Positions 1 through 44,568 of a stretch of 64,000 nt of DNA are shown piece by piece. Source of the stretch: Schizochytrium sp. TIO01 (taxonomy: Eukaryota > Protista > Bigyra: Labyrinthulomycetes). Made by a program: the position numbers and the translations under genes. The notes under the pieces are model-generated. The model was not told where the DNA came from. It worked only from the letters and a program-made list of their open reading frames with translations, and searched no databases. The DNA is taken from assembly GCA_004764695.1 (NCBI GenBank), contig SMSO01000033.1, forward strand, positions 620,001 through 684,000, in the 5' to 3' direction. Numbering within the stretch: the stretch's first letter is position 1; the number at the start of each line of letters is the position of its first letter.

Positions 1-3000
1 TGTAAGCAGGTTTACGACCTTGAACATGTCGAATGGCTTATCACCTTGTGCCGGCGTGGAGAAGACCAACGCTTAGAAAGGATCCAGGAGGAAGCTATGC
101 GACTTGTTGATGGGTGGGCGCGTAACTTACAAACATATATTCCTGCCGATGGTGTTCCAGTTCCAGACCCTCTGCGCGACGAGCTAATCGATAGTGCAGT
201 CACGTTCTTGGAGGACGAACAAGTCAAAGATAGATCTGTCGATGAAAAGGTACAATTCTTGTTAGATAAAGGCTTGAATCGAACTGAAATTCGGATTGCG
301 TGTGCTCAGGTTGGTGTGGAACCACCTAGCTCATTGCTATATTCGGAACCACTGCGCCATGAAATGGTAAAGAACGGTGCATCATTTTTAACAATTGATG
401 ATGTGAAGGACAAACCTCTAGCGGAAAAACTGTCTTTTCTCAAATCCAAGGGCTTAGCCGATGGTGAGATCATGCGCGCCTGCGAACTTGCACGTCTGGA
501 TCCGCTTCCTACACCTGAGGACTTGAAAGGCCTTCATGAATACCAGGAGCGCGCACCTCGTGAAGATATGGTTAAAAATGGCGCCATTTTCCTCAATCAC
601 AAGTCAATGGCTTCAAAAACATTGCGTGAGAAGCTTGAATTCCTTAAAACTAAAGGTATGACTGCGACCGAAGTAGCCAAGGCATGCGAACGAGCAAAAG
701 TGGATCTCCCTAGTGATCTTCGGAAAGAGTTCGCTGCTTCCACAACGACTACCACAGAAGGAGGTCGTGGCACCGGTGGTGGTAGCGACGGCTCCAAGGT
801 AAATGAGGCGTCATCTGGCAATGCAAAATCTGGTAGATCGTCTGCTGAAGATGGCACCCCAGAGTCAGTTCGTAGTGAGATGGTTCAAAAAGGTGTTACA
901 TTTTTGTCCCATCCTTCAGTTGTAAGCAAGCCTGTTGTCGAAAAGCTCGCATTCCTTCGGGAAAAATCTTTGACCGAAGCTGAAATCAAGCAGGCTTGCA
1001 AAGAAACGAACGTGGCATATATTGCTGGAACCGTTGGACTCTCGCAGGAGAATGTAAGAAAGGCAGTTGCATTTCTGCGTCATCCGAGTGCTCAGGGTCG
1101 TCCTTTACAGGAAAAAATAAGTTATCTTCGCTCAAAAGGCCTCTCTACAGAGGAAATTGAAGCAGCCTGTCGTCAAGTTGGTGTCCGATCAGCTGGTATT
1201 GGCATGTCCTATACCAATGCTGAATTAAACGAACCCTTTGAGGACGTCTCGGAGGAAGATGATCGTGACTCCTCTTCTAAAACTCCCAAGACACTTACAA
1301 ATGAAGAGGTAGAATCAATGCGACGTGTGCGACAAGGCCAACGCTTTCTGCTTCATGAAAAGACTCAAAAACTTGAGAATCGAGACAAAGTAAGCTTTTT
1401 GCTTGGAAAAGGCCTCTCCTTAGACGAAATTGAATCCTGTTTCGCGGTGGTTGGCCTGCCATGGGACGAAGAAGAAATGAAATCTGTGAAGCCCGAAGAT
1501 CAGTCTAAAGCGCGCATGGAGCGGGCTGAGCGATTTCTAGAAGATCAGCGAGAAAAGGTTCCTGAAGACGAAACATTTGATGCACAAAAACAGGCTCTGT
1601 TTCTTTGTCAACAAGGAATCCCCGAAAAGGAGCTTTCAAGAGTCTTTGAAAAGCTAGGCTTAGAATTGGATACCTCAAAACTTGATGAAGACATGGTTAA
1701 TATCGGTCGAACATTTGCTCAGAAGGCTGGCACGGGAGCAAAAGCTCGGAATTTCTTACAGAAAGAGAAGAATCTCTCTGAAGATCAAATTAATCGTGCC
1801 TTTCAAGGTCTCGAGAATAATCCAGTTGAGCTTGCTCGCCGGTTCCTTACAAGCTCTCAGGCTGCAAGAGAACCTCTTGCTGAACGCATCAACTACTTAC
1901 GGCAGCATCAAAATCTTTCAGATGAGCACATCCGTGAAGCCTTACAGCTAGCTGGTCTTGAAGCAACTGAACAAGACTTTCAAGATCCTGCAACTGTCGA
2001 TCCGCTCGTTGCACAAGGAGCAACGTTTTTGTCAAGTGCTGCTGCCGCCGCAGCGAGTCTGTCCCAAAAGAAAGAATTTTTGAGTAGCAAGGGTCTGTCG
2101 AAGTCTCAGATCATGGCCGCATTTCAACGTGCCGGACTTGACCCGGAAAAGGAGACTGTTCCAAGGCCTGAGGCAGATCCGTTAGTAATTCAAGGCCGTG
2201 CTTTTCTGACAAGTCCCAAAACTGCGTCTGTTTCTCTGGCAGAAAGGGCGGCTTTCCTGCGCTCAAAAGGGCTTTCTGAAGAACAGATCAAATCTGCGTT
2301 TGAGCTGTCGAATCAGGTTTTGCCATCTCAAGCTGAAGTTGAGTCTGCAAGCATTAAATCTGCACGATCACCTACGTCTAGCTCCGAGCCCTCATCTTCT
2401 AAAACATCAGAATTGGCATCCTCGGGGGATGCGCTTGTAGACCAAGGCGCTCGCTTTTTATTAAATGAACAGGCTGCTGCAGCGAGCGTCGCGGAGCGCA
2501 AATCCTTTTTGCGCAGCAAAGGACTAAGCGAAGATCAAATCCATCAAGCTTTCAAACATGCAGGTGTTAGCGAGAGCTCAATTCGAAAAGAAATGGTCGA
2601 TCGTGGTACTCGTTTCCTGAAAGACCCGAATACCGCAGATACACCGATCGAAGATCGTATTGAGTTTTTGAAGCAACAAGGGTTGACTGAAGACGAGGTA
2701 CTCCAAGCTGCTGTTCAAGCAAAAGTTAGTTTAGTTCCATCACATTTGTGCACGATTCCTTCTAAGCAACTTCGAGAGGATAGCAACAAGGAGTCTCTCG
2801 ACACAGAACCCTCTGGTCGTGCTTTGCAACATGCTATGAACGCCATGGTCTCTCTTTTGCCAACAGTAAAGATTCGTGCAACACCAAGTGGAAGATTTGG
2901 ATCTCGGGTTCTCATGCTCCTGGCTACTTGTTTATGTCGCAGTCGACCAGCAAGAGTGCCTGCAGCTTGTATTGCCTTTAGTTCTTTGAGCATGTCCAAG

Positions 3001-5034
3001 GGCCTACGAAATCATGAGGCTGCTGACATAGACCTCGCCGTTGAGTCAGATGTACAAGCTTTTCTCGAGGCTTGCGTTGAGCTTGCCGCTCGTGCTGCGC
3101 AAATAAATACTTATGCAAAAGAAGGGTTGGATCAGATGCAGCAAGTGAATTTGCATTTTATTTCTTGCGGAGATGTCGTTGGTTCTGTTCTTCGTTTTTG
3201 GCGGTCAAATTCCGCTGCGGATGTAAACGTAGATACTGGCATGATTCTTGCTCGCGCTGTTCATGGTCATTTCAGTCCCGCGGCTGCGTATCAGCCTATG
3301 AAGAGTGCAACAGAGCCAGCAATTGAAAAGGTTCTTGAGCATATGTCAACAGAGCGGCGTGGTCTTGCCCCTGTTGCTGCAGCATTCTTTGCTGCTGGCC
3401 TTTTAAGAGGCGCTCCCGACTATGCATGGGCTAACGATGTCGAGCGCAGCCCCCAACCCCGCGTTGAAGCTGGCTTTCGGCAACTTGCGCGGAAGTCTGC
3501 CAAACTTGAAGACAAGGTTGTGTCTTCCGGTTTAGGCTGCGCTATTGTGTATGCTGACACGCAGGTGTCCTGGAGTAACGCAATGACCTGGGCTGTAGCC
3601 GAATGTCTTTTTAACGAGGCACTGGGTGGTTTCTTTTTAGCATCAGGCTGTGCATCTCTTGAGGCCCGCTCGAACGCTTCTCGACGTTTCAACGAAAGAG
3701 AGATTTTTAAACTTGCGCCACAGTTGGTATCTTTGATTGTGAGCAAGCTTTCAAGCTCTCAGGCAACTTGGGCCACTCGTCGCCTTCATAAGTTTGCTGT
3801 GCATGTTCATCGTATATGTCGTGATGATGCAGAGCTCACGGGCGTTTTGGCACGCCGCACCACGTTAGCTCTCTACGGAACTGGAGAAGTGTCTACTTCA
3901 GAAGAAAATAACGTTGAGCAAGCTACGCCAGTCGACCTCGGGATCCATGCAGAGCTCGCCCGCCTTTTGCAAATGGGATATTTGACGACAATAGTAATTG
4001 GCGCAAAGACGGTGCCTCTAACTTCTGATTGGGTTCTTGTTTGGGATGCTATGGCAAACTTAAATGCATTTCAAGTGCGAGTCCAAGACACAGTAGATCT
4101 CGAAGATCTACTTAAACGTATGCTACACATGGAGGAAGAGCGTGGCGTAGGCGTACTTCTTGGACTCTTGGGAATCGGCGAGGATGACGATGGCACAGAT
4201 ATGAACGACTTCGGTGTAGCAGACCCTCGTGCTAAGGGAATGCGCCATGATGATCCAAGAAAACAGCTATATGACTGGGTCTTAGCAGGTCGCTTGGAGT
4301 TTTTACTGGACACTGGCGAAGAGTGGTTACATGATAAGCTCCCAGAAAGTGCAGCATTGGCTACACTTCTACTCGATGTAGCTGTGGCTCATCCATTTGT
4401 GCATCTCAACATGCGTGCGCATCGCTGGATTACGGATATGCTTCGAAACTATGCATCTGGTCAGTCAGAGGTAAAAGCGGACCCTCTCGGGCCGCCGCCT
4501 TTGCCTCTTGCAATTATTCCATCGTATGTTGACGCATCAATTGAGGCTCATCCCCACGCTACAGCTACACGGACTTTATCCTTTGCAATCGGTTCAACGC
4601 TAACTGCTTTGTCGAACCAACATGAAGAGCGTGCCCAACCCTTAGCTCTAATGACTCTCGAACGGCTGATGTTAGCACTTGATGATCGTATTGCAGGACG
4701 ACCGGAATTCAAGCAAGACGGGGCCATACTGGCCAAAATTCTTTTTTCTTCTTTGAAGGCAACGGCTTGGCCAATTTTCCCTATGGCTGTTGACGAGGTT
4801 GTCGACGTTATTGAGCGGGCGCCACTTACACTTTCGCAAGACCATTCAGAAGAGGTTAGTCTCTCTGATGAAAAGGATAGTGAGACACCACCCGATGGAT
4901 CGTCGCGTATTTCACGTAAGGAACTTGTAGAGCTTATGTTCAACGCTATCCAGACGACAGACGACCAACCCCGCCGCATGTATCTTGCCAAGGCATACCT
5001 TAAGCTTGTGCAATCATCAACGTGCAGGCTGTAA
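1..5034 (+). CDS. Giant peroxin-like protein (5'-truncated): ~13 tandem Pex14_N domains + Pex8-like alpha-helical domain, C-terminal PTS1 (-CRL)
   Basis: Frame is open from nt 1 (the ORF-track start at 46 is a TTG). Repeats such as PREDMVKNGAIFLNHKSMASKTLREKLEFLKTKGMTATEVAKAC match the Pex14_N pattern (R.emv..A..FL......s.l.eK..FL.sKGLt..EI..A) from ~170 to ~2725. The C-terminal ~740 aa are helical and end ...QSSTCRL*. Confidence 0.8.
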   Translation, partial: CKQVYDLEHVEWLITLCRRGEDQRLERIQEEAMRLVDGWARNLQTYIPADGVPVPDPLRDELIDSAVTFLEDEQVKDRSVDEKVQFLLDKGLNRTEIRIACAQVGVEPPSSLLYSEPLRHEMVKNGASFLTIDDVKDKPLAEKLSFLKSKGLADGEIMRACELARLDPLPTPEDLKGLHEYQERAPREDMVKNGAIFLNHKSMASKTLREKLEFLKTKGMTATEVAKACERAKVDLPSDLRKEFAASTTTTTEGGRGTGGGSDGSKVNEASSGNAKSGRSSAEDGTPESVRSEMVQKGVTFLSHPSVVSKPVVEKLAFLREKSLTEAEIKQACKETNVAYIAGTVGLSQENVRKAVAFLRHPSAQGRPLQEKISYLRSKGLSTEEIEAACRQVGVRSAGIGMSYTNAELNEPFEDVSEEDDRDSSSKTPKTLTNEEVESMRRVRQGQRFLLHEKTQKLENRDKVSFLLGKGLSLDEIESCFAVVGLPWDEEEMKSVKPEDQSKARMERAERFLEDQREKVPEDETFDAQKQALFLCQQGIPEKELSRVFEKLGLELDTSKLDEDMVNIGRTFAQKAGTGAKARNFLQKEKNLSEDQINRAFQGLENNPVELARRFLTSSQAAREPLAERINYLRQHQNLSDEHIREALQLAGLEATEQDFQDPATVDPLVAQGATFLSSAAAAAASLSQKKEFLSSKGLSKSQIMAAFQRAGLDPEKETVPRPEADPLVIQGRAFLTSPKTASVSLAERAAFLRSKGLSEEQIKSAFELSNQVLPSQAEVESASIKSARSPTSSSEPSSSKTSELASSGDALVDQGARFLLNEQAAAASVAERKSFLRSKGLSEDQIHQAFKHAGVSESSIRKEMVDRGTRFLKDPNTADTPIEDRIEFLKQQGLTEDEVLQAAVQAKVSLVPSHLCTIPSKQLREDSNKESLDTEPSGRALQHAMNAMVSLLPTVKIRATPSGRFGSRVLMLLATCLCRSRPARVPAACIAFSSLSMSKGLRNHEAADIDLAVESDVQAFLEACVELAARAAQINTYAKEGLDQMQQVNLHFISCGDVVGSVLRFWRSNSAADVNVDTGMILARAVHGHFSPAAAYQPMKSATEPAIEKVLEHMSTERRGLAPVAAAFFAAGLLRGAPDYAWANDVERSPQPRVEAGFRQLARKSAKLEDKVVSSGLGCAIVYADTQVSWSNAMTWAVAECLFNEALGGFFLASGCASLEARSNASRRFNEREIFKLAPQLVSLIVSKLSSSQATWATRRLHKFAVHVHRICRDDAELTGVLARRTTLALYGTGEVSTSEENNVEQATPVDLGIHAELARLLQMGYLTTIVIGAKTVPLTSDWVLVWDAMANLNAFQVRVQDTVDLEDLLKRMLHMEEERGVGVLLGLLGIGEDDDGTDMNDFGVADPRAKGMRHDDPRKQLYDWVLAGRLEFLLDTGEEWLHDKLPESAALATLLLDVAVAHPFVHLNMRAHRWITDMLRNYASGQSEVKADPLGPPPLPLAIIPSYVDASIEAHPHATATRTLSFAIGSTLTALSNQHEERAQPLALMTLERLMLALDDRIAGRPEFKQDGAILAKILFSSLKATAWPIFPMAVDEVVDVIERAPLTLSQDHSEEVSLSDEKDSETPPDGSSRISRKELVELMFNAIQTTDDQPRRMYLAKAYLKLVQSSTCRL

Positions 5035-5430: not shown

Positions 5431-6576
5431 CTAGTTGGATTTCAAAGGAAATTTCTCCTCGCGATTGTGGGGGGTGTTGTAGTGGACATCATACCAGCAC
5501 TCAGGGAACTCCTTGTCAGAATTAAACTTGAAAGGGGAGATTGGGATGATGCTGAACGGATTGATATTCTTGTGACTGCAGGTGTAGTGGGTCTTAGCAT
5601 CATCAATCTCGACCGTCTCAAGAATGCCAGGCATCTGCAAGATCTCTTTGGTGTACTCGAAGAGGTTCGGGCACGTTTCAGAAATGCGGCGGATGCACTT
5701 GAAATGGGAAGCGTAGATCTCATCGAAGCGAACTGCGGTGACGAAAAGACGAATGTCAGCCTCAGTGAAGCGAGTGCCATCTCCAGCGATGTACCGCTGC
5801 TTGGAAAGAATAGCCTCAGCATCATCAAGCGCCTCCCAGACCTCATGAACAGCCTCGTTGTAGGCTTCCTGAGACTTGGCAAAGCCAGAGCGGTAGACGC
5901 CATTGTTGAACTGGTTGTAGAAAGAGTCGTTGACGGCGTCAATATCTTTCTGCAACTCTTTCGGGTACAGGTCAACTCCAGCGAGAGGGGCAGATTTGTC
6001 GGCAAACTCGTCAAACTCCTTGAGCATGCGGATAATCTCAGCAGACTCGTTAGAGACGATCTTATCTTCTTGCTTGTCAAAGAGGATAGGTACAGTGAAC
6101 TTGGTGTTGTTACCAGATTTATCGACACGTTCGTAGACATCGCGGATAGTCTTGCAGCCGTGAAGTACATCGGGGCGCTCCTCAGAGAAGACCCAGCCAA
6201 TGTGCTTGTCGTCATCATCGTCAGGGCGAGTACGCTCCATGATGGGCATGACTGGGATCATTTGGATGACATCCTGAAGGCCTAGAAGGTTGCGCACGGC
6301 GTAGACGCGGCTGGCCCAAGGGCATGCGTAGCTAAAGTACACTGCGTACCGGTCCTTTGCTGGAGGAAACTCGCCATCAGCCTTGATCCAGTTCCTGAAC
6401 TTCGACTCCGTGCGGACGAACTTGCCCTTGTCGTCCGTCTCGTCCATCGCAGTCTGTGCTTTACCCATCTTGAACTCAAGTCTTGCGCCGCACGTGCTCC
6501 TCGTCGCTAGTCTCGCCGTCTCCTCACTTCTTCTCGCAAATACTCCTGCTCCGCGCTGTGCAAGCCGTGCAAGCAT
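5431..6576 (-). CDS. Glutathionyl-hydroquinone reductase (omega/xi-class GST, YqjG/Ecm4 family)
   Basis: Motifs GKFVRTESKFRNWI, YFSYACPWASR (CPWA active site), FTVPILFDK, IVSNESAEIIRM, NNGVYRSGFA, TEADIRLFVTAVRFD, HYTCSHKNINP. In-frame ATGs at 6576 and 6468. Confidence 0.95.
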   Translation of the reverse strand: MLARLAQRGAGVFARRSEETARLATRSTCGARLEFKMGKAQTAMDETDDKGKFVRTESKFRNWIKADGEFPPAKDRYAVYFSYACPWASRVYAVRNLLGLQDVIQMIPVMPIMERTRPDDDDDKHIGWVFSEERPDVLHGCKTIRDVYERVDKSGNNTKFTVPILFDKQEDKIVSNESAEIIRMLKEFDEFADKSAPLAGVDLYPKELQKDIDAVNDSFYNQFNNGVYRSGFAKSQEAYNEAVHEVWEALDDAEAILSKQRYIAGDGTRFTEADIRLFVTAVRFDEIYASHFKCIRRISETCPNLFEYTKEILQMPGILETVEIDDAKTHYTCSHKNINPFSIIPISPFKFNSDKEFPECWYDVHYNTPHNREEKFPLKSN

Positions 6577-9428: not shown

Positions 9429-9592
9429 GTAAGCAAACTTTGTTAAAGGTGCAGAGCGTTGCTAACCTGCAAGCTGTTCGATTCGTCGACGAGCAGGGAA
9501 GCAAGACAACTGGCCAGACAATAAGGTCTCGTCAAGGATCAATCGGGGCAAAGCTCCAACTTCCTTTGTTGTACTTTTGCATCCTAACTCAG
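9429..9592 (+). other. Probable 5'-UTR intron of the kinesin-like gene
   Basis: CAG|GTAAGC donor at 9429; pyrimidine tract and CCTAACTCAG branch/acceptor ending at 9592, 2 nt before the ATG at 9595. Confidence 0.45.
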
Positions 9593-9594
9593 CC

Positions 9595-12500
9595 ATGAAT
9601 GTTGAGGTAGTTGTTCGTGTTGTGCCGACAGGCAAGCACGGAGATGACGGATTTGGATCTGCTTCCAGACGTGGCTCGACACTTAGCTACTATGTTGAAG
9701 AGGACGAGAGTAAGGACCATTTTGATGAGGACGGCATCGATACAGAAAAATGCGTCACAGTGTGTAATTCATCTACATTAAGATCGGGTTTCAAGGTTTT
9801 CGATGTTGATGCCATCACTGAAGTTGATATGGCCAGATGCCAGGATCGAGTGGATCTGGAGAAACTTTTTCAATCTTTCATTCGCCCTGTTGTTCAATCA
9901 AGTCACCAACTGCAACGCACTGGTCTCGTGATGATTCAAGGTTGCGCCCATCATGATGATTTTGTTTATGTATTACATCAAATTGTTGCATCTTGCCTGC
10001 ATGAAGCGGGGAGGAACATTCCCATTCGCTTGACCGGCACCGAAGTATGGAATGAAACAACGAGAGACCTTATCGCTCCTGAAACCCAGGAAGATCAAGT
10101 TTTAGCATCTAAAGGCTCGAGCGTGAAAATTCGTGCGCCAGAGGATGTCCTCGGCCTTGCTGCTCTCCTTCTGAAACGTCGAAGGCGAGCACGTGGCCAA
10201 CGCGGTTTTGTTTCTCACATGATCGTGTCTTTGACCTGGGGCAAAGGTTGTGGTCTTGACCTTGTCGACCTTGCTGAAGCCCATCATGGAGCTTCCCAGG
10301 AAATGCGTTGTATTAAAAAGTCTCGCTTAGCACTCGAAAAAGTGATATGTGCGTTAAATTCAGCAAACATGCAACGCGGAGGTCACATTCCCTTTCGGGA
10401 CTCCAAATTAACCCGCATGCTTCAACCTACTTTGTTGCAGCCATCACGTGTATTACTCCTTGCAACTGTAGGCCAATCTATGGAGGAATCGATCGGAACA
10501 CTCTCTACGCTCGAATTTTGCAACAATATCCGAAGGGGTAAACGCCAGCGACGAAATTCCAGTGTTTCACTCCAGCCTAGTCAAATTTCAAATGATGTGG
10601 AGTCTGTAAGCTCTCGGCAGTCGTTTTCGACTTTAGCTAGCGCAGATGTTAAGTCGCTTGGTCTTCCGGTTACTACTGAGCCTCCCGAGGAGAACTTCTC
10701 GCGCTTACAGCGTGATAACCGAGCCAAAGCTCGTCTCATAAATATCTTAGCCTCTGAAACAGTCGGGAAGGGTGATGCAATTAAATCGCTTGTTGAGGAA
10801 TCCCGTGACAAGCAACAAGCACTTGAAAATGCGCAAAATGAGGTTGCAGCACAGCGTGAAATTATCATGCAAATGCGCGGACAAATTGAAGAGCAGCAGC
10901 TCCGCATCGAGCAACTTGCGGAGCAAAGTCAGCGGTATCTACTTGTGACAGAGACGAGCAAGAGTGCTGCAGCCCAAGCCCATCGTGACGCAGATGCTCG
11001 TATTGCCGATCTCGAGGCAGCGAATGAACGTTTGATGGAGCGTACTGCCAACAGTGCGGAGGAGTACACTATCAAACTCAAACAACAGCTCGTATCTTTA
11101 GATAAGGTAAGCGCCGAATTGTCACAAGCTCGAGCAGAGCAAGCGGCTATGCGCGTTGAGCACGAGGCTGTACTGCACACTTTGCGAACCGATTTCAACG
11201 CAGAAAAAGCCAAACTTAAGCGGGAGGCTGTTGAGCTCGCTCATGAATGCCAAGTGCTAGAGCAGCATCATGAGCGTCTAGTGAATGAATGTAGACTTCT
11301 CGAAGATGATCACAGCAGGTTTCAAGTTGAAGTTGCTGCACATGCTCGTTCTGCTTTATGTGCCGAAATGCGAGCAGTAGTTAAAGCGCGTAAATGGCAA
11401 ATGCGTGCTCGAGCATGGGAAACAACTTGCATTGCGATGCTCAGAGCTGCTTTAAAATCACAAGAAGGACTTCGTTCAGACCTTCGAACTGTCTTAGGAA
11501 TTGCAACAGCCATTCGTTTTGCATTTGCAATTTCCCTCCAATCGAAAGCTTCAACATCAGACCAGCGTCAAGAATTTAAGGCTATGCGCTCACCGAGTTT
11601 GGACTATGAAAAGGAGTTACCAGTTGTACTGCCTGGTGATGAAGAAAAGAAAATTTCTGAAGGTGATGTGTGGAGCGCACCATCGCAGGACGATAGCGAT
11701 ATTTGCGATTACTCCCAATTTATGGATAATGTAGAACACGCTATGACTGTGGATGACTACGAAAAGGCAATGTCCTTGCAAGGCCTTGATGCGGCTTCTC
11801 TTGAAGATGACGAGCTTATTACTCAACTCGAGGATGCACGTAGTATGCAGAATGAATTAGACCAAATGCTTGAGTTAGCTTGTCAGTCGTCATTGGTGGA
11901 GTCGGTTGATATGAACGAAGGAGACAGTATTCAACAAGAGCTTGAAAGCCAGATGCATGAGCTTGACGCCGAATTAGAAGAGCTCGAAATTCGCAGTATT
12001 GGTAGCAGTCTTTATATTAGTAGCGTAGCAGACGGAGATACCGCGACAAGTAATATAATAGGTGCAAAGAACCCAGATCAAATCGAGAATTCCTCAGCAA
12101 AATGTTGTATCGAAACTGAATCTCAATTGGAAATTCAAGGCGACTATTCAGATGTTGATAAAGAAGCGTCAATGGACGAAGATAAGGTTTCTTGCCTGGA
12201 AGATCCAAATGATATGATTAAGGCTTCTTGCGAAGAATACCCAGATAATTTTGTCCCTACAAAAGAGAAAGAGGGAGACAAACAAGAATTGTCTACGGAT
12301 TGCGACTCATTGGTCGGGGCAGTTGAAATCATTCGAGTAATCCAAGATATCGTCGAAGAAGTTGTGAAAACTTCAAAGATTACAAATTTGTCTGCTTCAA
12401 TGATTGTATCAGAGAAAGCTTATGGAAATTGCCCGCAAAAGGGGATTGAAGAGAGCATCAAAAGCAAAGACAGTTCTAGGTGCCCTGAAGGGGACAGCAC

Positions 12501-13365
12501 GGGGAAGTATCATACAGAGGGTGCAAGTAACTCATCTAGCTCAGGAGACAATATTCGTGAGGTGGACTCTGAGGAGTCTTCCCACGAAGATGAACAAATT
12601 CAGGAAACTTTGACTTGTGCGGACGTTTCTAGTTCCTCTGTTCTGGTTACAAACAATGCCGATAGAATGGAGTCCGGCAGTTTTGGAGCAACAAGGTCTT
12701 GCATTAAAACACCTCTGTCCATCGAGACAAGTTCTATCGAATTATTTGTCGAAGAAGAAGCACGCATTGAGCAGGAGCTTCTTGCCAAGGTTGAGAATCT
12801 TGAAAATACAATTCGCGACCGAGATGCAACCATCGAATCTCTGGAGCGTCTCCTTCTCAGTGACACTATCGAGGAAGACTTTACTGAAAACGATCAAGAC
12901 AGTATTGCAAGTGGGTCCACGAGATCAGCGGAAGAGCTTCAGCGTCTCCAACAAGAGCTTGCTTCTGCTCGTCATGAGCTTGAAGTTGCCCATGAGGAGA
13001 GAAAGCAGACGCTTCAAGCTCTGGAGCGCAAGAGCGCTGTGATTTCCCAGCTTAGCTTGGAGCGTAACCAATTCAATGAGGATAAGAGCAGCATTCAGCG
13101 AGAAGCATTTAACATTATTTCCTGGTTACAGCGAGAGGATGATCGCAAATCCAAATTAATTGCGGCTCTTCTGAAAGAGAAGAACACAGCACCTCCAGTG
13201 TTTACTAAGCCCACGGCTGTGTCTGCTTTTACCCCAGTAGAAAATCCGTTTTTGTCCCCACCAGTTTCACCTCGTGCGCCTGAACCTACGCCTAAAGTGA
13301 ACTCAGTAGAGTCAACACAGCAGAGAGAGATGAGAATTCCTTCACCTGCGAATTCGCTCGACTAG
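9595..13365 (+). CDS. Kinesin-like protein with degenerate N-terminal motor domain, long coiled coil and acidic tail
   Basis: NVEVVVRVVP, EVWNETTRDL, LVDLA, KSRLALEKVICAL, HIPFRDSKLTRMLQPTL and ESIGTLSTLEF are kinesin motor hallmarks, followed by heptad-rich segments. P-loop and switch motifs are not canonical. Confidence 0.85.
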   Translation: MNVEVVVRVVPTGKHGDDGFGSASRRGSTLSYYVEEDESKDHFDEDGIDTEKCVTVCNSSTLRSGFKVFDVDAITEVDMARCQDRVDLEKLFQSFIRPVVQSSHQLQRTGLVMIQGCAHHDDFVYVLHQIVASCLHEAGRNIPIRLTGTEVWNETTRDLIAPETQEDQVLASKGSSVKIRAPEDVLGLAALLLKRRRRARGQRGFVSHMIVSLTWGKGCGLDLVDLAEAHHGASQEMRCIKKSRLALEKVICALNSANMQRGGHIPFRDSKLTRMLQPTLLQPSRVLLLATVGQSMEESIGTLSTLEFCNNIRRGKRQRRNSSVSLQPSQISNDVESVSSRQSFSTLASADVKSLGLPVTTEPPEENFSRLQRDNRAKARLINILASETVGKGDAIKSLVEESRDKQQALENAQNEVAAQREIIMQMRGQIEEQQLRIEQLAEQSQRYLLVTETSKSAAAQAHRDADARIADLEAANERLMERTANSAEEYTIKLKQQLVSLDKVSAELSQARAEQAAMRVEHEAVLHTLRTDFNAEKAKLKREAVELAHECQVLEQHHERLVNECRLLEDDHSRFQVEVAAHARSALCAEMRAVVKARKWQMRARAWETTCIAMLRAALKSQEGLRSDLRTVLGIATAIRFAFAISLQSKASTSDQRQEFKAMRSPSLDYEKELPVVLPGDEEKKISEGDVWSAPSQDDSDICDYSQFMDNVEHAMTVDDYEKAMSLQGLDAASLEDDELITQLEDARSMQNELDQMLELACQSSLVESVDMNEGDSIQQELESQMHELDAELEELEIRSIGSSLYISSVADGDTATSNIIGAKNPDQIENSSAKCCIETESQLEIQGDYSDVDKEASMDEDKVSCLEDPNDMIKASCEEYPDNFVPTKEKEGDKQELSTDCDSLVGAVEIIRVIQDIVEEVVKTSKITNLSASMIVSEKAYGNCPQKGIEESIKSKDSSRCPEGDSTGKYHTEGASNSSSSGDNIREVDSEESSHEDEQIQETLTCADVSSSSVLVTNNADRMESGSFGATRSCIKTPLSIETSSIELFVEEEARIEQELLAKVENLENTIRDRDATIESLERLLLSDTIEEDFTENDQDSIASGSTRSAEELQRLQQELASARHELEVAHEERKQTLQALERKSAVISQLSLERNQFNEDKSSIQREAFNIISWLQREDDRKSKLIAALLKEKNTAPPVFTKPTAVSAFTPVENPFLSPPVSPRAPEPTPKVNSVESTQQREMRIPSPANSLD

Positions 13366-14562: not shown

Positions 14563-15810
14563 ATGCTACGAGCTGCTGCACGTTCTGGAGGAGTGAGGAA
14601 GTTTGGCTCGATAACACTGCGAAACATGGCAACGGCTTCGGGCTCCACCACGACCAGGACAACGCGTGCACGCAAGGTCAAAGATGATGCCGAGGTGAAA
14701 GACAAAGTCGCTGAAAGTCCCGTCAAGAAGACACGCAAGCCTTCGACAAAGAAACCCGCTGAGGAGGATAAAACTCCAACAAAGCAGACTAAAGCGACGA
14801 AGTCCAAGGCAAAAGCCGAAAAGCCCGCCGATGATGCCCCAAAGGCAAAGAAGGCTCGCAAGACCCCGGCAGAACGTGATGCTGGCAAGTCTATTTTTCC
14901 GCGTGAGGAAACCAAACGCCAACTCGTAGAAGAAGGTAGACTCGACAAAGACTTGTTCAAGGTTATTTCGTGGAATGTGAACGGGCTTCGTGCACTTACT
15001 CGTAAACAGCCCACACTTCTTCAAGAGCTTGTAGATGCTGAGAAACCTCACATTGTTTGTCTCCAGGAGACCAAGATCCAAGAAAACCACGTCGATCAAT
15101 TTGATAAGCTTGTGAAGGGTTATACGAGCTTCTGGTCATGCTCCACCGTGAAAAAGGGCTACGCAGGAACAGCAATGTTTATTTCGGAGAAATTCAAGCC
15201 TGAGGAATTTACCATCAGCTATGGTATTGGGCTTGATAAGCATGAAGGCGAGGGGCGGGCCATTACAGTTCGCCTTCCATTTTGCAATATTGTTGCACTC
15301 TATGTTCCTAATGCAGGCCAGGATCTTAAACGGCTTGATTACCGGACCAAAGAGTGGGACTTGGACTTGCGGACTTACTTGCGCGACCTTGAAACTGAGA
15401 CTGGTCGACCGTGCATTGTTTGTGGAGACCTAAATGTTGCTCACAGAGACATGGATGTCTGGAACCCCGATGCAAAGCACGTTCCAAAAACAGCAGGTAG
15501 TACACCCGAGGAAAGGGCTTCTTTTACTGAGTTTCTTGATGAGATGAAGTATGTTGATGCCTTCCGCTATTTGCATGGAGATGTGCTTGGTCATTTTACA
15601 TACTGGTCTATGAGGACAAATGGCAGACCTTTCAACCGTGGTAACCGTCTTGACTATTTTTGCATGCCTCAATCAATCGCTGACCGAGAGGCCAAAACTG
15701 AAGTTCCGGTGCGTCTTTTCGACACTTATGTCTTACATGAGCCAACTGTTGGCGTCAGTGACCATTGCCCTGTCGCTTGCATTATGGAGGTGACTGACAA
15801 AAAGGAGTAA
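14563..15810 (+). CDS. APE1: AP endonuclease 1 / exodeoxyribonuclease III family
   Basis: ISWNVNGLRA, CLQETK, KKGYAGTA, EGRAIT, YVPNAG, CGDLNVAH, FTYWS, RLDYF, SDHCPV. Arg-rich N-terminus followed by a Lys-rich region. Confidence 0.95.
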   Translation: MLRAAARSGGVRKFGSITLRNMATASGSTTTRTTRARKVKDDAEVKDKVAESPVKKTRKPSTKKPAEEDKTPTKQTKATKSKAKAEKPADDAPKAKKARKTPAERDAGKSIFPREETKRQLVEEGRLDKDLFKVISWNVNGLRALTRKQPTLLQELVDAEKPHIVCLQETKIQENHVDQFDKLVKGYTSFWSCSTVKKGYAGTAMFISEKFKPEEFTISYGIGLDKHEGEGRAITVRLPFCNIVALYVPNAGQDLKRLDYRTKEWDLDLRTYLRDLETETGRPCIVCGDLNVAHRDMDVWNPDAKHVPKTAGSTPEERASFTEFLDEMKYVDAFRYLHGDVLGHFTYWSMRTNGRPFNRGNRLDYFCMPQSIADREAKTEVPVRLFDTYVLHEPTVGVSDHCPVACIMEVTDKKE

Positions 15811-17459: not shown

Positions 17460-19229
17460 ATGTCAATGCCCCCGTCTGATCGGATGCGACCATGGTCGGC
17501 CAAGCAGCACAGCTCGCTTAACTCGCAGGCAATATCTTTAGAAAAAACGAGCTCCATACCCGCACGTCCAGCGTCGGCTATGGACCGTCTTCGGAGTAAT
17601 CGAGATATTGGTGACCCACTGACAGGGATTCGAAAACGCAACTTATATCAAGCTCATGCGCGACGAATCTATTCTCGTGAAATGACAAATCTTGACGAGC
17701 AACTTGACATGCTTGCTGCATCCATGCGTCAAGGACCTGAGAAGACTGATCATGAAAAGCGCGTGACAGCTATGGCGGCCCACCTCAACAAACAAGCTCG
17801 AGATGCTTTCCTTCAAGAGTCGCAGCATCAAGCAGCAGGCTATGCGGGCCGTCGGAGACCTTCCGCAACAGCTGTAGAGCCAAGCGTGCCTTTACACATC
17901 GCCAGTCAACGTGCTGAAGAATCAGCGAAGGCATATGGACACGGGGCTACACCATTTACTCGTCATGAACCAGAAGTCGAAGCCGAACAGTGGCTCGAAC
18001 ACATGTGGCTCGCTAAACGTACAAAGGATATGGTTTCCCGGGCACAGGAAGAGCAAGTACGGAAAGCTTTACGAGATTGGGAACGACAGCGACAAGAACG
18101 CGAAGATGCATTTGAAAACATTCTTCGGAAGAGAAAACAGTTACGGGGCTCAACTTTGCCGATGGGCTGCAAATCATCTCGAAGTGTCGATAATCGTGTG
18201 GAGGTGGATTCTGATGTACAGAGAACTCGTATGGAACGAAATCTCAAAGTCTTTGAAACTACAACAACAAATTCACATGTACCCCCGCCCCCCTTTCGAC
18301 AGCATTCCGCTAGTACTGCGGAGCAGTTGCAAAGACCTAAGTCAGCAGTTCCTACTCGCCGAGCGAAATCATTTTCCCTACGCTCAGAAAATGATGCTTC
18401 CTCAGCGCAAAAAAAACAAGCAATCGAATCCTCCAGTAAATCTCGCAAGATTGTTCCTTCGCATTTACTTGTTCAACGACGTGTGGTTATGAGCAAGACA
18501 AAAATTAACCCAGTTGAAGAGAAAATGGACGAGAGGAATAACGCTCCTTCACATAATGATGTGGCGCTAGAAGACCTCAGTGAGGGATCACAAGAGCTAC
18601 CGGAGAGTTCGATTAGAAGCAGCGCCGGAAAACCATCCCCAGGAACCGAGCTTTTGACTGGAGAATCCAATAGAGAGGCAGATTCGAGTTTAGAAAACTT
18701 GGAGGATCGCTCAAGAAGAGGCTCTGAGCAGGAAACTCAGAAAGGGCTTGTAGTCCTATCCTCATCCTCAAGATGCAATAAGTTTGCCTGGGATGTTGGA
18801 GAGGATTACGAACTTGAGGTTTTAGAGAATGCAGCTAATAATCGTGCAGCTACTCATAAACTAATGCAAAACGGCAAAATCCAGTACTTGTCAGCACAAA
18901 CGAATGATCAGTTATCTGAATGCCGAGCAATTCTTGAGCGCTTTGAGGACAAAGGTCTAGGCAGCGAAATCTCAGCAGAAACACTTTATCGAGCATTAGT
19001 GACACCACAAGATATTCCTTATAAGATTGCTATTAAGAATCTTAAACTCCCAGGGAGCACACTGCCTCATGACCCTGCTGTGCTGGCCGCAAAGAAGGCT
19101 GCTTCTGGGAAAAAGGGAAAGAAGAAAGGACTCAAAAAGAAAGCGGGTGGAGCTAAGAAGAAAGCAAAGAAGGCAGGAGCAAAATCGGGCGCCTCATCAC
19201 CAAAGAAGGGGAAGAAAAAGAAGAAGTAG
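17460..19229 (+). CDS. Hypothetical protein with coiled coil, disordered middle and poly-Lys C-terminal tail
   Basis: 589-aa ORF with ATG start. C-terminal segment RALVTPQDIPYKIAIKNLKLPGSTLPHDP is followed by a ~45-aa K/A/G-rich tail. Confidence 0.75.
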   Translation: MSMPPSDRMRPWSAKQHSSLNSQAISLEKTSSIPARPASAMDRLRSNRDIGDPLTGIRKRNLYQAHARRIYSREMTNLDEQLDMLAASMRQGPEKTDHEKRVTAMAAHLNKQARDAFLQESQHQAAGYAGRRRPSATAVEPSVPLHIASQRAEESAKAYGHGATPFTRHEPEVEAEQWLEHMWLAKRTKDMVSRAQEEQVRKALRDWERQRQEREDAFENILRKRKQLRGSTLPMGCKSSRSVDNRVEVDSDVQRTRMERNLKVFETTTTNSHVPPPPFRQHSASTAEQLQRPKSAVPTRRAKSFSLRSENDASSAQKKQAIESSSKSRKIVPSHLLVQRRVVMSKTKINPVEEKMDERNNAPSHNDVALEDLSEGSQELPESSIRSSAGKPSPGTELLTGESNREADSSLENLEDRSRRGSEQETQKGLVVLSSSSRCNKFAWDVGEDYELEVLENAANNRAATHKLMQNGKIQYLSAQTNDQLSECRAILERFEDKGLGSEISAETLYRALVTPQDIPYKIAIKNLKLPGSTLPHDPAVLAAKKAASGKKGKKKGLKKKAGGAKKKAKKAGAKSGASSPKKGKKKKK

Positions 19230-19507: not shown

Positions 19508-21877
19508 TCACCAAAGTAGAAATGCAAATCTCTCGTTGATGTCCTCGCGGATGACTCGTGCAGAAGGGGGCAGCCATGCATTACTTGTCTCCAGAGCTTT
19601 GGCCAAGGCGTCGAACATGTCCTTAGTGACCTGAATTACACCAAAATGTGCGTCGACGCCGTCCTGAGTTTGTTGATCCCGGTAGGTTACCTTGAGAACA
19701 GGTACCATCTCTGGTCCTGTTGCAGGTGTTCGTATCCATGAATCAGTTGTCCAAAGTTGTACGCGAAGAGAGCGACCATCAGATACACATTCAATAAGTA
19801 CTGTGCGCACTTCGTGAGTCTCGCTGAGGCGAGCCAAACGCGCTCCCAGAATGCTTCCAGCTGCATCATCATAGGTATTAAACACGGGTGTTGCAGAAGT
19901 TTGCACACGGTACTTAAAGAGACGAATTTCTTGAAGTTCATCTAGGCCTCCATCAGCAGTGCCAGCCGCGCTTATGTTTTTATTTTGACGATCAGGGACG
20001 ACTGCTTCACCAATCCAAGAGCCACATGACTTACACTCAATAGCTCGCCGTATAAGATGTTCCTGGGAGCGAGTGGCATCATCAACGGCTTGTTTTACGT
20101 TTGCAAGCTCTATGCAAAGTTGGATAGCTTCAAGATTTGCATCCTCGCGGCAAACGTCTACGTGCGCATCGTCTAAGACAAGCACTCCAGGACGTGCAAC
20201 GATAGCCTCTGATCGAAACGCCCTTGTCGCAGCATCGCTCGTACCTTTTGATTTCTCATAAACTTCTGGTGGAACACAAGTGAGATGCTCAAGCATCTCA
20301 GTCCAGGGCATCAAAGGAGCTTGATTGACGCTATGGGATGGTTTAGTTAAACTAGCTGCACACTTACGGCATTGAATACCGTTTCTGTAAGGGCCTTCTT
20401 CTTGTTCTACAGGCGCAGGGTGCAGTAACTGGCGCTGCAAACGAGCATTTGCTGCAGAGAACATGTTACTGAAGGCCAGGCGAGCGGCTAAAAAGTCTCC
20501 ATTATGGAAACTCAGAGTACTCCGGTCAAGATCAACTTGCTCATCTACAGCAAGTTCAATGTAAGGAACGAGATGCAAAGCCTCACGACCCGTTTTGTCG
20601 ATACAAGCCCCCCTTCGGGGCGCAAGAATTCGAACCTTGATCTTCTCGTCGATGGTCATTGTTGGAATGCGTGGATCAGGACTGGAGGTCATTAGTTTTG
20701 CAGGCAGATGAGTGCCAGAAAGATCCACCTTGCGGCCTTCTACTAGCTGGTGAAGGGGCATGTAAAGCCAGTAGCACAGGAGGTTAGGCTCCTTAAGAAG
20801 CATAAAAGGCGGGGTTGGTTCCTTGTTGATAATATGAATCCCTAATTCCGTACCTGAAATTTCGATTATCTGGGACCGCCCGGCACATCGTCTTCCTTGA
20901 TCTGCAATATACCTAAATTCATAGCGGCCCGTCTGAGCTGGGCGTCGCATGTGAATCAACCCTTCCCTTTCCCAAGGGATTGTTGGGACTTCTATATTGT
21001 AGGACTCCTCAATGTCACATTCATTCTGCAAATATAGGCCGATGAAATCCATCTGACGATCTGGTGCTGGATTTGGGCCTTCCGCTTCTAGACTTCCAGC
21101 AACCTCAAATCGAACAATAAGTACTTTTTCGTCTTCAGAAGATTTACATACATCAAGCATTACCTGAAATGTGGAGAGCGGCGGGAGCGCTGTACTAGAT
21201 CGCGATGGAGCCGGGGCACTAGGAGCTGTAGTGTTCATTTCGTGCGGCTTCGTATGAAAGCTATCGTTTGGTTCTGGATGCTGGGAGGACACTTGTGCCA
21301 TTAGAGATGCGGTGGCCTTTTCAAACTCTTCTTTCTTTCCCTTCAGGGAAGAGATTTCGTGCTGCGAGATAGAACTCTTCGCGTCCCGCAACTGCTCCTC
21401 TGCTACGTTCTTGGCTCCTGATGCTCTCTTAAATTGTTCAAGTGCCTCTTGTGTTTCCTGTTGAGAGGCAGAAAGTGATTCGAATGGGTCCACATGTCCA
21501 AGGCTCTTGGCGATACTTTTGAGTTGTTTGCGATCGTCTTTAGTCAGGCATCGAGCTGCCGCTTCATGCAATGCTGTTGAGGTAAGATCTTCATCCCCAA
21601 ATTTATGTGATGCGCGAGCAAGGCGAACCCATCCTTTTACAAAGTCATGAGGTGCATGTTTAATACAGTTGAATGCACATTTTGTAGCTTCCTCAGCATT
21701 GCCTATCTTCAGGTGAGCCATGGACAGGTTCGACCACGAAAGATGACACGAGTCATTGATATGCACTGCTTCTAAATAGTGCGTAATAGCTTTCTCTGCA
21801 TCCCCACTAGCAAGTGCTTTGTTTCCTGCTTCGCGAGCTTTACTGGCATCACCCAAGACTTGCGCTGTAGATGCCAT
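19508..21877 (-). CDS. TPR + SKICH-like + HECT_2 (UBE3D/Ipa1-like) domain protein
   Basis: N-terminal TPRs (REAGNKAL...AITHYLEA, WSNLSMAHLKIG, KGWVRLARA). DFIGLY...GRYEFRY is SKICH-like. CRKC, CKSCGSWIG, IRLFKYRV and LETSNAWLPPSAR are typical of HECT_2. First ATG at 21877; the upstream ORF extension is a microsatellite. Confidence 0.75.
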   Translation of the reverse strand: MASTAQVLGDASKAREAGNKALASGDAEKAITHYLEAVHINDSCHLSWSNLSMAHLKIGNAEEATKCAFNCIKHAPHDFVKGWVRLARASHKFGDEDLTSTALHEAAARCLTKDDRKQLKSIAKSLGHVDPFESLSASQQETQEALEQFKRASGAKNVAEEQLRDAKSSISQHEISSLKGKKEEFEKATASLMAQVSSQHPEPNDSFHTKPHEMNTTAPSAPAPSRSSTALPPLSTFQVMLDVCKSSEDEKVLIVRFEVAGSLEAEGPNPAPDRQMDFIGLYLQNECDIEESYNIEVPTIPWEREGLIHMRRPAQTGRYEFRYIADQGRRCAGRSQIIEISGTELGIHIINKEPTPPFMLLKEPNLLCYWLYMPLHQLVEGRKVDLSGTHLPAKLMTSSPDPRIPTMTIDEKIKVRILAPRRGACIDKTGREALHLVPYIELAVDEQVDLDRSTLSFHNGDFLAARLAFSNMFSAANARLQRQLLHPAPVEQEEGPYRNGIQCRKCAASLTKPSHSVNQAPLMPWTEMLEHLTCVPPEVYEKSKGTSDAATRAFRSEAIVARPGVLVLDDAHVDVCREDANLEAIQLCIELANVKQAVDDATRSQEHLIRRAIECKSCGSWIGEAVVPDRQNKNISAAGTADGGLDELQEIRLFKYRVQTSATPVFNTYDDAAGSILGARLARLSETHEVRTVLIECVSDGRSLRVQLWTTDSWIRTPATGPEMVPVLKVTYRDQQTQDGVDAHFGVIQVTKDMFDALAKALETSNAWLPPSARVIREDINERFAFLLW

Positions 21878-22013
21878 TATGCAGCTGATTTTAGTCGCCT
21901 TTGTTGTGCCCTGTATGAAATTGAAGTTTCTCTTTGGTAGGGGGAGAGCTTTTGATTTTTCTCCAGAATAAAATATAAACGTCTCGCCAATATTGATGTG
22001 AAGCTTACTATCC

Positions 22014-22093
22014 GTCTGTCGTTGTCGTTGTCGTTGTCGTCGTTGTTGCCGTCGTCGTTGTTGCCGTCGTCGTCGTCGTCGTCGTTGTTGCTG
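22014..22093. repeat. (GTC/GTT)n trinucleotide microsatellite upstream of the HECT_2 gene
   Basis: gtcgttgtcgttgtcgttgtcgtcgttgttgccgtcgtcg... read directly. Confidence 0.9.
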
Positions 22094-23500
22094 CTTGTCC
22101 AAACCTCTCCACAACTCAACGTTTGGTTGCGAAAGATCTAATTCTCGATCGATCGATCACTCACGGCGTCGCCTGTCGAAATCTGCTCTCACTTGCAGCA
22201 GCAGTTACAGCCACCGAACTATGAAAACAAAGGCAGTAATCTTGCACTGTCTTTGCAAAAGCCACGGCGCGCAACCTCGGTAGCACAAGTTAAATTTTGT
22301 TGCTGCGTCGCAAGAGTAGCTCTAACATTATGAAGACTTTGGCAAAAAAGAAAAGAAAAGAGAACAGAATAATAACGATTAAAGTAAGACTATCATTATT
22401 TTGTTGATATCATAAAAAGAGAATCAAAACGAGCAAAACGAGAGGCTCGCCTTACTTTTATTCTTTAATTTTAATTTTTAATCTTTAAAAACTGTAGACT
22501 TGAAAAGGAAAAAGAAAAAGTGCCTAGGCTTCAATAGTAAAAGCACTACCCGTAGTATTTTAAAACGGGAACAAAGGAAAGAAGAGGAAAAAGTTAACCA
22601 CTGCGAAGATCCCAGAGATTCCCTACCACGAACAACTAATTGGAGGAAACACAACACGTAGCAATAACAACGATAAACAGATTTAAGCATCTTCCTTGCA
22701 ATGTATATCCAACTGAAGAAGTCGAAATTCCCTCCTCGAAGAGTTTGTGAGGTTTGGGACTATCGACGATGAAGTAAAGTTGAGGATGAAGTGTACCTGG
22801 CAACGATGAGAAGAATAACGAGAGATTCGGAGAAAGACTTCAAAGGGCAATAGGAGGTTGGCGATTCGCAGGCAACTTTAAACCAACTAAATTCAGTTTT
22901 GCTGCTTGAGTGAAAACAGATCAAACATTGAAATTCTCTCATTTCAAACTGCAAAAAGTACATAGGTAGTCAGTCCTATTAAGACAATTTTTCAAATCGG
23001 TCTAGTAAGCTTTGGATCTAGCTCACAACTGTGCCCGAGTGTCTCAAATCCAAGCAACACAATAATGAAGCATTGTCCTGTACACTTCTTACCAAGAAGG
23101 AGCTCTATATAGTACCTACATAATTTATTCAGTTAATATTGATAACAGTTTGCAAGAAACAATATTCTTTGTCTCCTTTCTCCAATACAAATGTTAGAAG
23201 GTTTCACCCAATTCACAAAAGAGATTGATTTTATTGTACATGAACATGGTGTTGACATTGTCTGCTGTTCTCAGCTGCGAGCGTGCGAAGTACATCAAAT
23301 AGCGAAATCTACTTGGTAGACGACGGGTCGCGGATTAGTCTGTATTTTCATCAAGGAGTACTATGAAAGCACTCTAGGGACTCGCAAGGGGAGTCAAAGC
23401 TCTTCTTCTATGTTGGTTCGAGATGTTTCACATGAGCAATTGCTTTCTTTGGCTTGAGCGTTGACAAGAGCTCAACCAATTGCCACGGCTGGTGATGCCT

Positions 23501-43642: not shown

Positions 43643-44568
43643 TGCAACGATTGTCAACAAGCCGTGCTTCTCGACTTGATTGTTTCCCTTGCCTCACAAA
43701 TGGGCACTGGCAAGTTGACGAGCTGGAAAACCCTGAATGCACGAAGCGTAAATAGCTAAGACAATATCAAGCGCTGGAAAGAGACGCAGCACAGCTTCTG
43801 CTGTACCACGACTTCAGCACTCAAGGTCTCCCGCTCAAACGGTTGTATACCCACGTTTGCAGAAACACCAGCTTGCTATTATACAAGCTTTGAAAGCTCT
43901 TTCGTACTGATATATATGCTCCTGCTTTCCAGCACCTGTTATTAATTCATTCGTAAAATATACGGGTATCAATTCATTCAGACACTGACTGGGCTCGTAA
44001 CGGTAAACCCGGTTATGAGTTCTATGTTAGCTTAGCTGCTGGATTAGAAATGGTAAAGTTTTATGTTTTATGTAACTTAAAGGTTACGTATTTTGCGGTT
44101 ATCATTCCCAGGAATCCGTTCTCAAGAGTTTTTGCGAACGAGTGCGCCAATATGTGTAGAACGGTGGATATATAAAGGCTCTATCATAGTGGATAGGTAC
44201 AACTCGATTAAAATGAAAATATATAAGCTTGGCTTCGAAAAAGACTTTACAATTGCTTGCAAGCAAGACCTTTAGCTCTTTGTTGCTTTGGTTTGAGCGC
44301 GAGAGTGCTCTACAAATGCACGTTGCCTGAATGAGCCAGTACGGCAATAATAAGACATAAACGGGCAGCCCCTAGCGCCGAAAGTAGTGCACATTATTTT
44401 CATCAGGTAATAGTCAGTAGTGCTAGAGTTTTGTTGCTGAAGGTGCCGAGGAACACAGACGATACAGATACAGTGTATTCAAAGCATCCTTCAAAGACTC
44501 CACATTATCAGCACTGATTGATCTCAAAGTTGGCAAATATCAACTGCAATAGTACTGAAAACACGACA

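Follow-up and report, generated by a model that had tools for sequence, protein, structure and literature searches.

The window analysed here is a stretch of 64,000 nucleotides (nt) from the thraustochytrid Schizochytrium sp. TIO01 (Labyrinthulomycetes, stramenopiles), positions 620,001 to 684,000 of contig SMSO01000033.1 (G000:C32:620001-684000), and the genome searched is the 64-Mb, 37-contig assembly to which it belongs. Its first 5 kb carry the greater part of a gene whose product combines an array of Pex14_N domains, a long helical domain and a C-terminal C-R-L tripeptide. Frame 1 of the forward strand is open throughout positions 1-5034, with a stop codon at 5032-5034, and this part of the coding sequence (1..5034) encodes residues 131-1807. 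The frame extends 5' beyond the window to an ATG at contig position 619611 (G000:C32:619611), 390 nt upstream of window base 1, and an in-frame stop lies four codons before that ATG. The whole gene (L012:611-6034) comprises 5421 nt without a stop and specifies a protein of 1807 residues with a predicted mass of 195 kDa. Recovery of this upstream part had been called for in an earlier reading of the DNA made without database searches (hereafter the sequence-only reading). An open reading frame (ORF) listed at 46-5034 is merely the portion of the longer frame that follows its first TTG codon. All features of the gene described below lie on the forward strand and are given in window positions.

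The N-terminal non-repeat region (residues 1-187) consists of an acidic low-complexity segment followed by a helical stretch and has no Pfam match; its distal end occupies 1..171. The array of 13 Pex14_N domains follows at 172..2742 (residues 188-1044), with linkers that are Ser/Thr/Gly-rich and acidic, and the C-terminal domain takes up the remainder at 2743..5031 (residues 1045-1807). No hydrophobic segment is present in the 1807-residue protein, in which the best 19-residue Kyte-Doolittle mean is 1.64 and lies within a helix of the C-terminal domain. A peroxisomal targeting signal of type 2 (PTS2) was also looked for in the full protein, and none was found. The combination of Pex14_N array, helical domain and C-R-L is real and well beyond chance, and it recurs exactly in other species.

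Domain structure of the Pex14_N array

The Pfam family Pex14_N (PF04695) matches the full-length protein with an E-value of 3e-96 and the window part with 1e-96, giving 11 stretches above threshold. A six-frame search of the genome with Pex14_N likewise gives 11 matches above cut-off in the frame of the array. A hidden Markov model (HMM) made from the array's own repeats resolves 13 units over residues 188-1044, and the count of about 13 repeats in the sequence-only reading was therefore correct. Its expectation of about 12-13 matches to PF04695 held as to the family and fell short as to the number, Pfam alone reaching 11.

Repeat 1 (172..330) is the best Pfam stretch and is 89% identical to repeat 1 of a Hondaea fermentalgiana protein that is described below. 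The genome scan and the own-repeat HMM both locate repeats 2 (352..513), 3 (559..717), 4 (868..1026), 5 (1039..1197) and 6 (1315..1464), as well as repeats 9 (1813..1965), 10 (1999..2145), 11 (2173..2328) and 13 (2584..2742). Repeat 12 (2428..2580) is placed by the same two methods and also by a residue-level alignment to the human PEX14 N-domain. The most degenerate units of the array are 7 and 8. Repeat 7 (1501..1668) is divergent, with a longer loop and a glutamine at the position of the lysine equivalent to human K56, and is located by the own-repeat HMM while lying below the Pfam cut-off. Repeat 8 (1681..1827), in which the first helix and the loop are shortened, is found by the own-repeat HMM only.

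Searched against PDB sequences, the repeats align to PEX14 N-domains of human, trypanosome and others. We take human PEX14 residues F35 and F52 to be the aromatic residues that form the WxxxF/Y-binding pockets (PDB 2W84). By the PDB alignment, their equivalents are kept as aromatic residues (F or Y) in 13/13 units, and the K56 equivalent is a lysine in 10/13. The repeats have a median identity to one another of 37%, and each is 33-52% identical to the N-domain of the organism's own Pex14, save unit 7 at 19%.

The C-terminal domain is predicted to be a HEAT solenoid resembling Pex8

An AlphaFold2 model of residues 1045-1807 (2743..5031) has a predicted local distance difference test score (pLDDT) of 82.6 and a predicted TM-score (pTM) of 0.80. 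The model is an all-alpha solenoid of the HEAT type with about 33 helices, in keeping with the helical domain that the sequence-only reading had placed after the repeats. When the whole domain was compared with 48,161 PDB representatives using VIA-align, the first-ranked entry was the crystal structure of Pichia pastoris Pex8 (PDB 8rqt), with a Z-score of 14.4 against 11.3 for the next match. The alignment to 8rqt covers 539 of 621 residues and runs end to end, placing model residues 88-761 on chain residues 43-706; the collinear part of the domain corresponds to 2992..5013.

For VIA-align, Z-scores below about 13 can be trivial for helical repeats, and halving is advised for long models. The C-terminal half was folded by itself (AlphaFold2, pLDDT 81.3) and submitted to the same search. 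Pex8 (8rqt) again ranks first, with a Z-score of 15.4 and the next match at 12.5; 290 residues are aligned at a root-mean-square deviation of 6.1 Å and 16% identity, with model residues 1-358 on chain residues 328-706. The C-terminal half of the domain maps onto the C-terminal half of Pex8, so the whole-domain and half-domain results agree in register, and both Z-scores exceed the level of about 13. The VIA-align searches are independent of the Foldseek ranking. Foldseek, run with the whole domain and with the C-terminal half, returned mixed HEAT proteins with weak E-values, among which 8rqt had the best TM-score both times.

Sequence searches with the domain gave no comparable link. A search of the genome for a second copy of the C-terminal domain found none, and the domain is single-copy. 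Searching with the alignment of the C-terminal domain returned nothing at E <= 0.1, the words used having probably come from sparsely aligned low-complexity columns, and a protein atlas search with the solenoid gave scores of 0.75 only, which is below the useful level. The likeness of the modelled domain to Pex8 is supported by structure and not by sequence. The sequence-only reading had proposed the same likeness from C-terminal sequence blocks; the proposal itself is supported by the first rank of 8rqt among the 48,161 structures, and the resemblance of the blocks could not be demonstrated with family profiles at E-values up to 10.

A conserved PTS1-type end and a near-terminal aromatic pair

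The protein ends in the tripeptide C-R-L (5023..5031, immediately before the stop codon at 5032-5034), which is of the type 1 peroxisomal targeting signal (PTS1) class, as the sequence-only reading had stated. All 12 relatives with a complete C-terminus also end in a PTS1-like tripeptide, namely CRL, ARL, AKL, GKL, GRL or ASL ([ACG][RKS]L). Shortly before the end, the last helix of the solenoid contains a conserved block of the form acidic-Asp-x-Pro-Arg-Arg-x-x-Leu-Ala-x-Trp-[Tyr/Phe]. The W-[Y/F] pair lies 11-14 residues before the end in 9/12 family members, and one relative has Y-Y instead. In the window protein the position of the pair is taken by K-A-Y (4990..4998).

Pex8 is a HEAT protein of the lumen whose 713 residues end in a PTS1; its last helix bears a WWY motif (residues 700-702), which is essential (bioRxiv 10.1101/2025.08.30.673231). 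Taking the register from the ends of the aligned ranges (model residue 358 on chain residue 706) and not from individual residues, we infer that the family's W-[Y/F] pair falls on Pex8 residues 700-701. In the family sequences, the conserved PTS1 and the near-terminal aromatic pair appear to match the PTS1 and the essential WWY motif of Pex8.

These features bear on an alternative that sees in the C-terminal domain no more than a generic HEAT/ARM scaffold resembling Pex8 and in the protein a lineage-specific paralogue of Pex14, a soluble adaptor that would use its many Pex14_N domains for a different peroxisome-related task while its solenoid binds some other partner. Such a scaffold would explain why there is no sequence-level tie to Pex8, why Foldseek E-values are weak and why many HEAT proteins reach Z-scores of 9-12; the caution about helical repeats also applies. 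It would leave unexplained that Pex8 comes first in two unbiased searches, with a lead of about 3 Z units over the following structure, and that the alignment is collinear from end to end with the C-terminal half on its counterpart in Pex8. A PTS1 is moreover conserved as in Pex8, as a near-terminal aromatic pair appears to be, and the fusion partner is itself a domain of an import peroxin. We consider a generic scaffold unlikely.

The fusion is conserved across relatives

An exhaustive phmmer search with the C-terminal domain against 1.84 billion representatives found only 16 relatives, all of which are Pex14_N fusions or fragments of such fusions. The nearest public relative is a 2200-residue protein from Hondaea fermentalgiana (P0002), labelled 'Peroxisomal membrane protein PEX14' (NCBI/UniRef). 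This label reflects the Pex14_N matches only and leaves the PEX8-like domain unmentioned. The Hondaea protein is the orthologue of the window protein: its 13 repeats follow the same order, its solenoid is 66-72% identical, and it ends in C-R-L. Its repeat 1 is preceded by about 500 residues compared with 187 in the window protein, a difference that shows the N-terminal region to be variable; this region is probably disordered.

Thirteen units are found in four relatives too; by species, three others have 13 and Mucochytrium has 12. Units 1-6 and 13 have their best matches in their positional counterparts in Hondaea, Mucochytrium and P0003; with its 12 units, Mucochytrium pairs its last unit with window unit 13. 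This positional pairing is mostly lost in P0005, the most divergent relative. More distant proteins, 24-31% identical in the C-terminal domain, carry 2, 4 and 5 Pex14_N units, so the fusion is older than the expansion to 13. Judged from these unit counts and pairings, the array is old. A search with the distant relative P0012 as query found only P0012 itself.

Every full-length relative has the fused frame, which is seen in no fewer than four lineages besides Hondaea fermentalgiana. The Mucochytrium quahogii protein, which is derived from an MMETSP transcriptome, has 1653 residues with 12 repeats and the C-terminal domain. Contigs from public sequencing runs of four studies were also compared with the gene. 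Single 6.1-kb contigs from two of the studies span array and solenoid with no joint, and in three studies a covering contig stops 120-230 nt past the stop codon, which is the pattern that transcripts would give. The single gene proposed in the sequence-only reading is supported by the fused relatives and the jointless contigs.

A Pex14-like and a PEX8-like gene lying side by side and accidentally read as a single frame would have some room only in that the covering contigs are guessed to derive from RNA. Against this stand 5421 nt without a stop, a fusion kept in proteins down to 24% identity and with 2-13 repeats, among them the MMETSP transcript-derived protein, and single 6.1-kb contigs from separate studies that span both parts and finish just past the stop codon. 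On these observations we reject two adjacent genes, to which we attach a negligible probability.

Along the gene, contigs of all four studies depart from the window sequence at a small number of single bases. At L012:478, about 130 nt 5' of the ATG and about 520 nt before window base 1, 11 nt are absent from the contigs of three other studies. Both the 11-nt gap and the single-base changes represent variation at strain level and affect the putative 5' untranslated region as well as the coding sequence.

Receptor and docking genes of the same genome

A canonical Pex14 is present elsewhere in the genome, as the sequence-only reading had suggested checking. It is an 802-residue protein encoded at G000:C3:1577217-1579622 (L013:3217-5622, forward strand), with one Pex14_N domain and a hydrophobic stretch, followed by PUB and KPWE domains. 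The PUB domain is of the p97/VCP-binding type, and the KPWE domain is PEX39-like, as in plant PEX14. The genome also contains three genes of the Pex2_Pex12 family (RING peroxins). A six-frame scan of the genome with Pfam Peroxin-13_N (PF04088) gave no match, a result that does not by itself show absence; Pex13 may be divergent, split by introns or absent.

The receptor Pex5 was located by a degenerate pattern for the motif W-N-K-L-G-A-T-L-A-N, and its product matches PEX5 TPR structures with an E-value of 1e-55. The same locus is among the first 30 in a TPR_16 scan of the genome, yet it was not picked by a filter on WxxxF/Y counts. The gene lies on the minus strand of G000:C30:5033001-5043000 (L046), with exon 1 at L046:5562-6365 and exon 2 at L046:3473-4681. 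At least one intron, some 0.9 kb long, interrupts the coding sequence, which was analysed as two separate, unjoined exons.

In its N-terminal half, Pex5 has the conserved cysteine (C13) and an F-A-A-E-F element, and a single WxxxF motif there is canonical (W-I-N-D-F). The multivalent receptor trap proposed in the sequence-only reading would imply many WxxxF motifs in Pex5, and the count of one runs counter to that. About ten further tryptophan motifs are present, mostly of the form A/Q-W-[Q/E], which have no second aromatic residue. Their sequences may reflect a form of the Pex14-binding motif that is particular to this lineage, and avidity of the array for weak single-aromatic motifs in Pex5 is one possible reading.

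A candidate PEX8 with an added receptor-binding array

Canonical Pex14 has a single N-domain followed by a hydrophobic segment and a coiled coil. The window protein shares with canonical PEX14 (the human N-domain, 2w84/4bxu, and the genome's own Pex14) the three-helix Pex14_N domain and both aromatic pocket residues. It differs in having 13 N-domains in place of one, and a PEX8-like solenoid in place of the hydrophobic segment and coiled coil. The region that follows the array is predicted by AlphaFold2 to fold as a HEAT solenoid and not as a membrane segment with a coiled coil. Because it has neither membrane segment nor coiled coil, we do not take the gene product to be a Pex14 orthologue.

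With fungal Pex8 (P. pastoris, 8rqt; bioRxiv 10.1101/2025.08.30.673231), the best structural match, the protein shares an irregular HEAT-repeat solenoid of similar length, a C-terminal PTS1, the lack of a membrane segment and, as it appears from the family, an aromatic motif in the last helix just before the PTS1. The two are only 12-16% identical, with no HMM-level similarity. Whereas fungal Pex8 has WWY, the window protein has A-Y there and no PTS2, and it carries about 1040 extra N-terminal residues with 13 Pex14_N domains, which no described Pex8 does. Arabidopsis PEX8 (At1g73970) is a lumenal HEAT solenoid with a canonical C-terminal PTS1, encoded by a single gene (Plant Cell 2025, PMC12264594). 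Compared by its description, it is like the window protein in being a non-fungal HEAT solenoid with a PTS1 that only structure or profile methods recognise, and unlike it in having no Pex14_N domains. In predicted fold and in terminal signal, the window protein corresponds to PEX8. The model makes homology of the C-terminal domain to PEX8 likely, and we hold with moderate confidence that the gene is the organism's PEX8 orthologue, which has gained at its N-terminus an array of 13 receptor-binding domains of the Pex14 type.

Several observations weigh against this assignment. HEAT solenoids score high Z-values with one another, and the margin of about 3 units by which Pex8 leads the next match is real but modest. 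Pfam gives no link to Pex8 for the C-terminal domain, and family profiles run against PDB sequences at E-values up to 10 returned Pex14 N-domains or noise and never 8rqt. In the window protein, as in the Hondaea protein, A-Y replaces W-Y at the site equivalent to WWY, and several relatives have a glycine at position -3 of the PTS1, which is non-canonical. Since Pex5 has only one canonical WxxxF/Y motif, its sequence shows no straightforward matching of the 13 domains to numerous diaromatic motifs. Finally, the RNA nature of the public runs is a guess. The silence of the profiles is not decisive either way, because plant and yeast PEX8 are themselves only 11% identical and were linked by HHpred alone (Plant Cell 2025, PMC12264594).

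If the gene is a PEX8 with an added array, its product would be a soluble 195-kDa protein that Pex5 recognises through C-R-L, and probably through the array too, and that is imported into the peroxisome lumen. There, the Pex14_N domains would bind the tryptophan-based motifs of the disordered N-terminal half of Pex5, so that the incoming receptor is held by avidity. The PTS1 of the fusion protein would compete with cargo at the TPR domain of Pex5. The PEX8 solenoid would bind the N-terminal helical segment of Pex5 and dock the receptor on the Pex2/Pex10/Pex12 ubiquitin ligase for recycling. Characteristic of PEX8 are binding of Pex5's N-terminal helical bundle and of the RING complex and a lumenal, membrane-associated location. 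For fungal Pex8, it has been proposed that the protein presents the N-terminus of Pex5 to the RING ligase (bioRxiv 10.1101/2025.08.30.673231). We infer a lumenal location, binding of Pex5 by either part of the fusion and a hand-off to the RING ligase. Since PEX8 is lumenal and the window protein, which is soluble, keeps a conserved PTS1, a place in the lumen is expected for the array as well.

The place of action could also be the cytosol, where the protein encounters Pex5 first. A cytosolic buffer or regulator would bind Pex5 (or Pex19) and tune the availability of the receptor, the C-terminal tripeptide serving only as an extra contact with Pex5. Thirteen receptor-binding domains could indeed compete with membrane Pex14, and PEX19 is a further known ligand of Pex14_N (PDB 2w85). 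However, there is no sign of cytosolic retention, and the PTS1-type end of every complete relative and the Pex8-like fold both indicate the lumen, the site of Pex8 action. A cytosolic role seems to us distinctly improbable.

Partners in a gene fusion usually cooperate. A PEX8 carrying Pex14_N domains would be a natural fusion in this sense, in which the receptor-binding domain of Pex14 and PEX8 act jointly on the lumenal side; the full mechanism of capture and hand-off we offer tentatively, at slightly less than an even chance. Whether the Pex14 N-domain-Pex5 interaction operates in the lumen is still debated in models of peroxisomal import. A lumenal, PTS1-bearing PEX8 fused to Pex14_N would be independent evolutionary evidence for an N-domain-Pex5 contact inside the organelle that is coupled to receptor recycling.

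Until 2025 PEX8 counted as specific to fungi; a structure-based search then revealed it in plants (Plant Cell 2025, PMC12264594). Surveys and reviews list PEX8 for fungi only (2021) or, in 2025-2026, for plants as well. Its distribution would be broadened by a PEX8-like protein from a stramenopile, which would also back the view that divergence in sequence conceals 'missing' peroxins. If the assignment is true, fungi and plants would for the first time be joined by another group with a PEX8, which would place PEX8 early in eukaryote evolution. In the literature on thraustochytrid or stramenopile PEX8 and PEX14, no paper was found that describes a Pex14_N array fused to a PEX8-like domain, in line with the sequence-only reading, which knew of no such peroxin. 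This suggests that the fusion of these two parts of the import machinery in one protein is undescribed. Thraustochytrids are transformable industrial oil producers, in which the fusion protein is directly testable.

Neighbouring genes

Three long ORFs of the window, at 17460-19229 (forward strand, 589 residues), 44518-47916 (forward, 1132 residues) and 48048-51809 (reverse, 1253 residues), match no Pfam family at E <= 1e-5. Peroxisome-related clustering is not seen around the fusion gene, and the neighbours that were identified are of unrelated housekeeping types. They comprise a GST-like gene at 5431-6576 on the reverse strand, a kinesin at 9577-13365 and an endonuclease/exonuclease/phosphatase-family (EEP) gene at 14563-15810 on the forward strand, and, again on the reverse strand, genes for a HECT_2 protein at 19508-22114 and an M18 aminopeptidase at 27461-28885.

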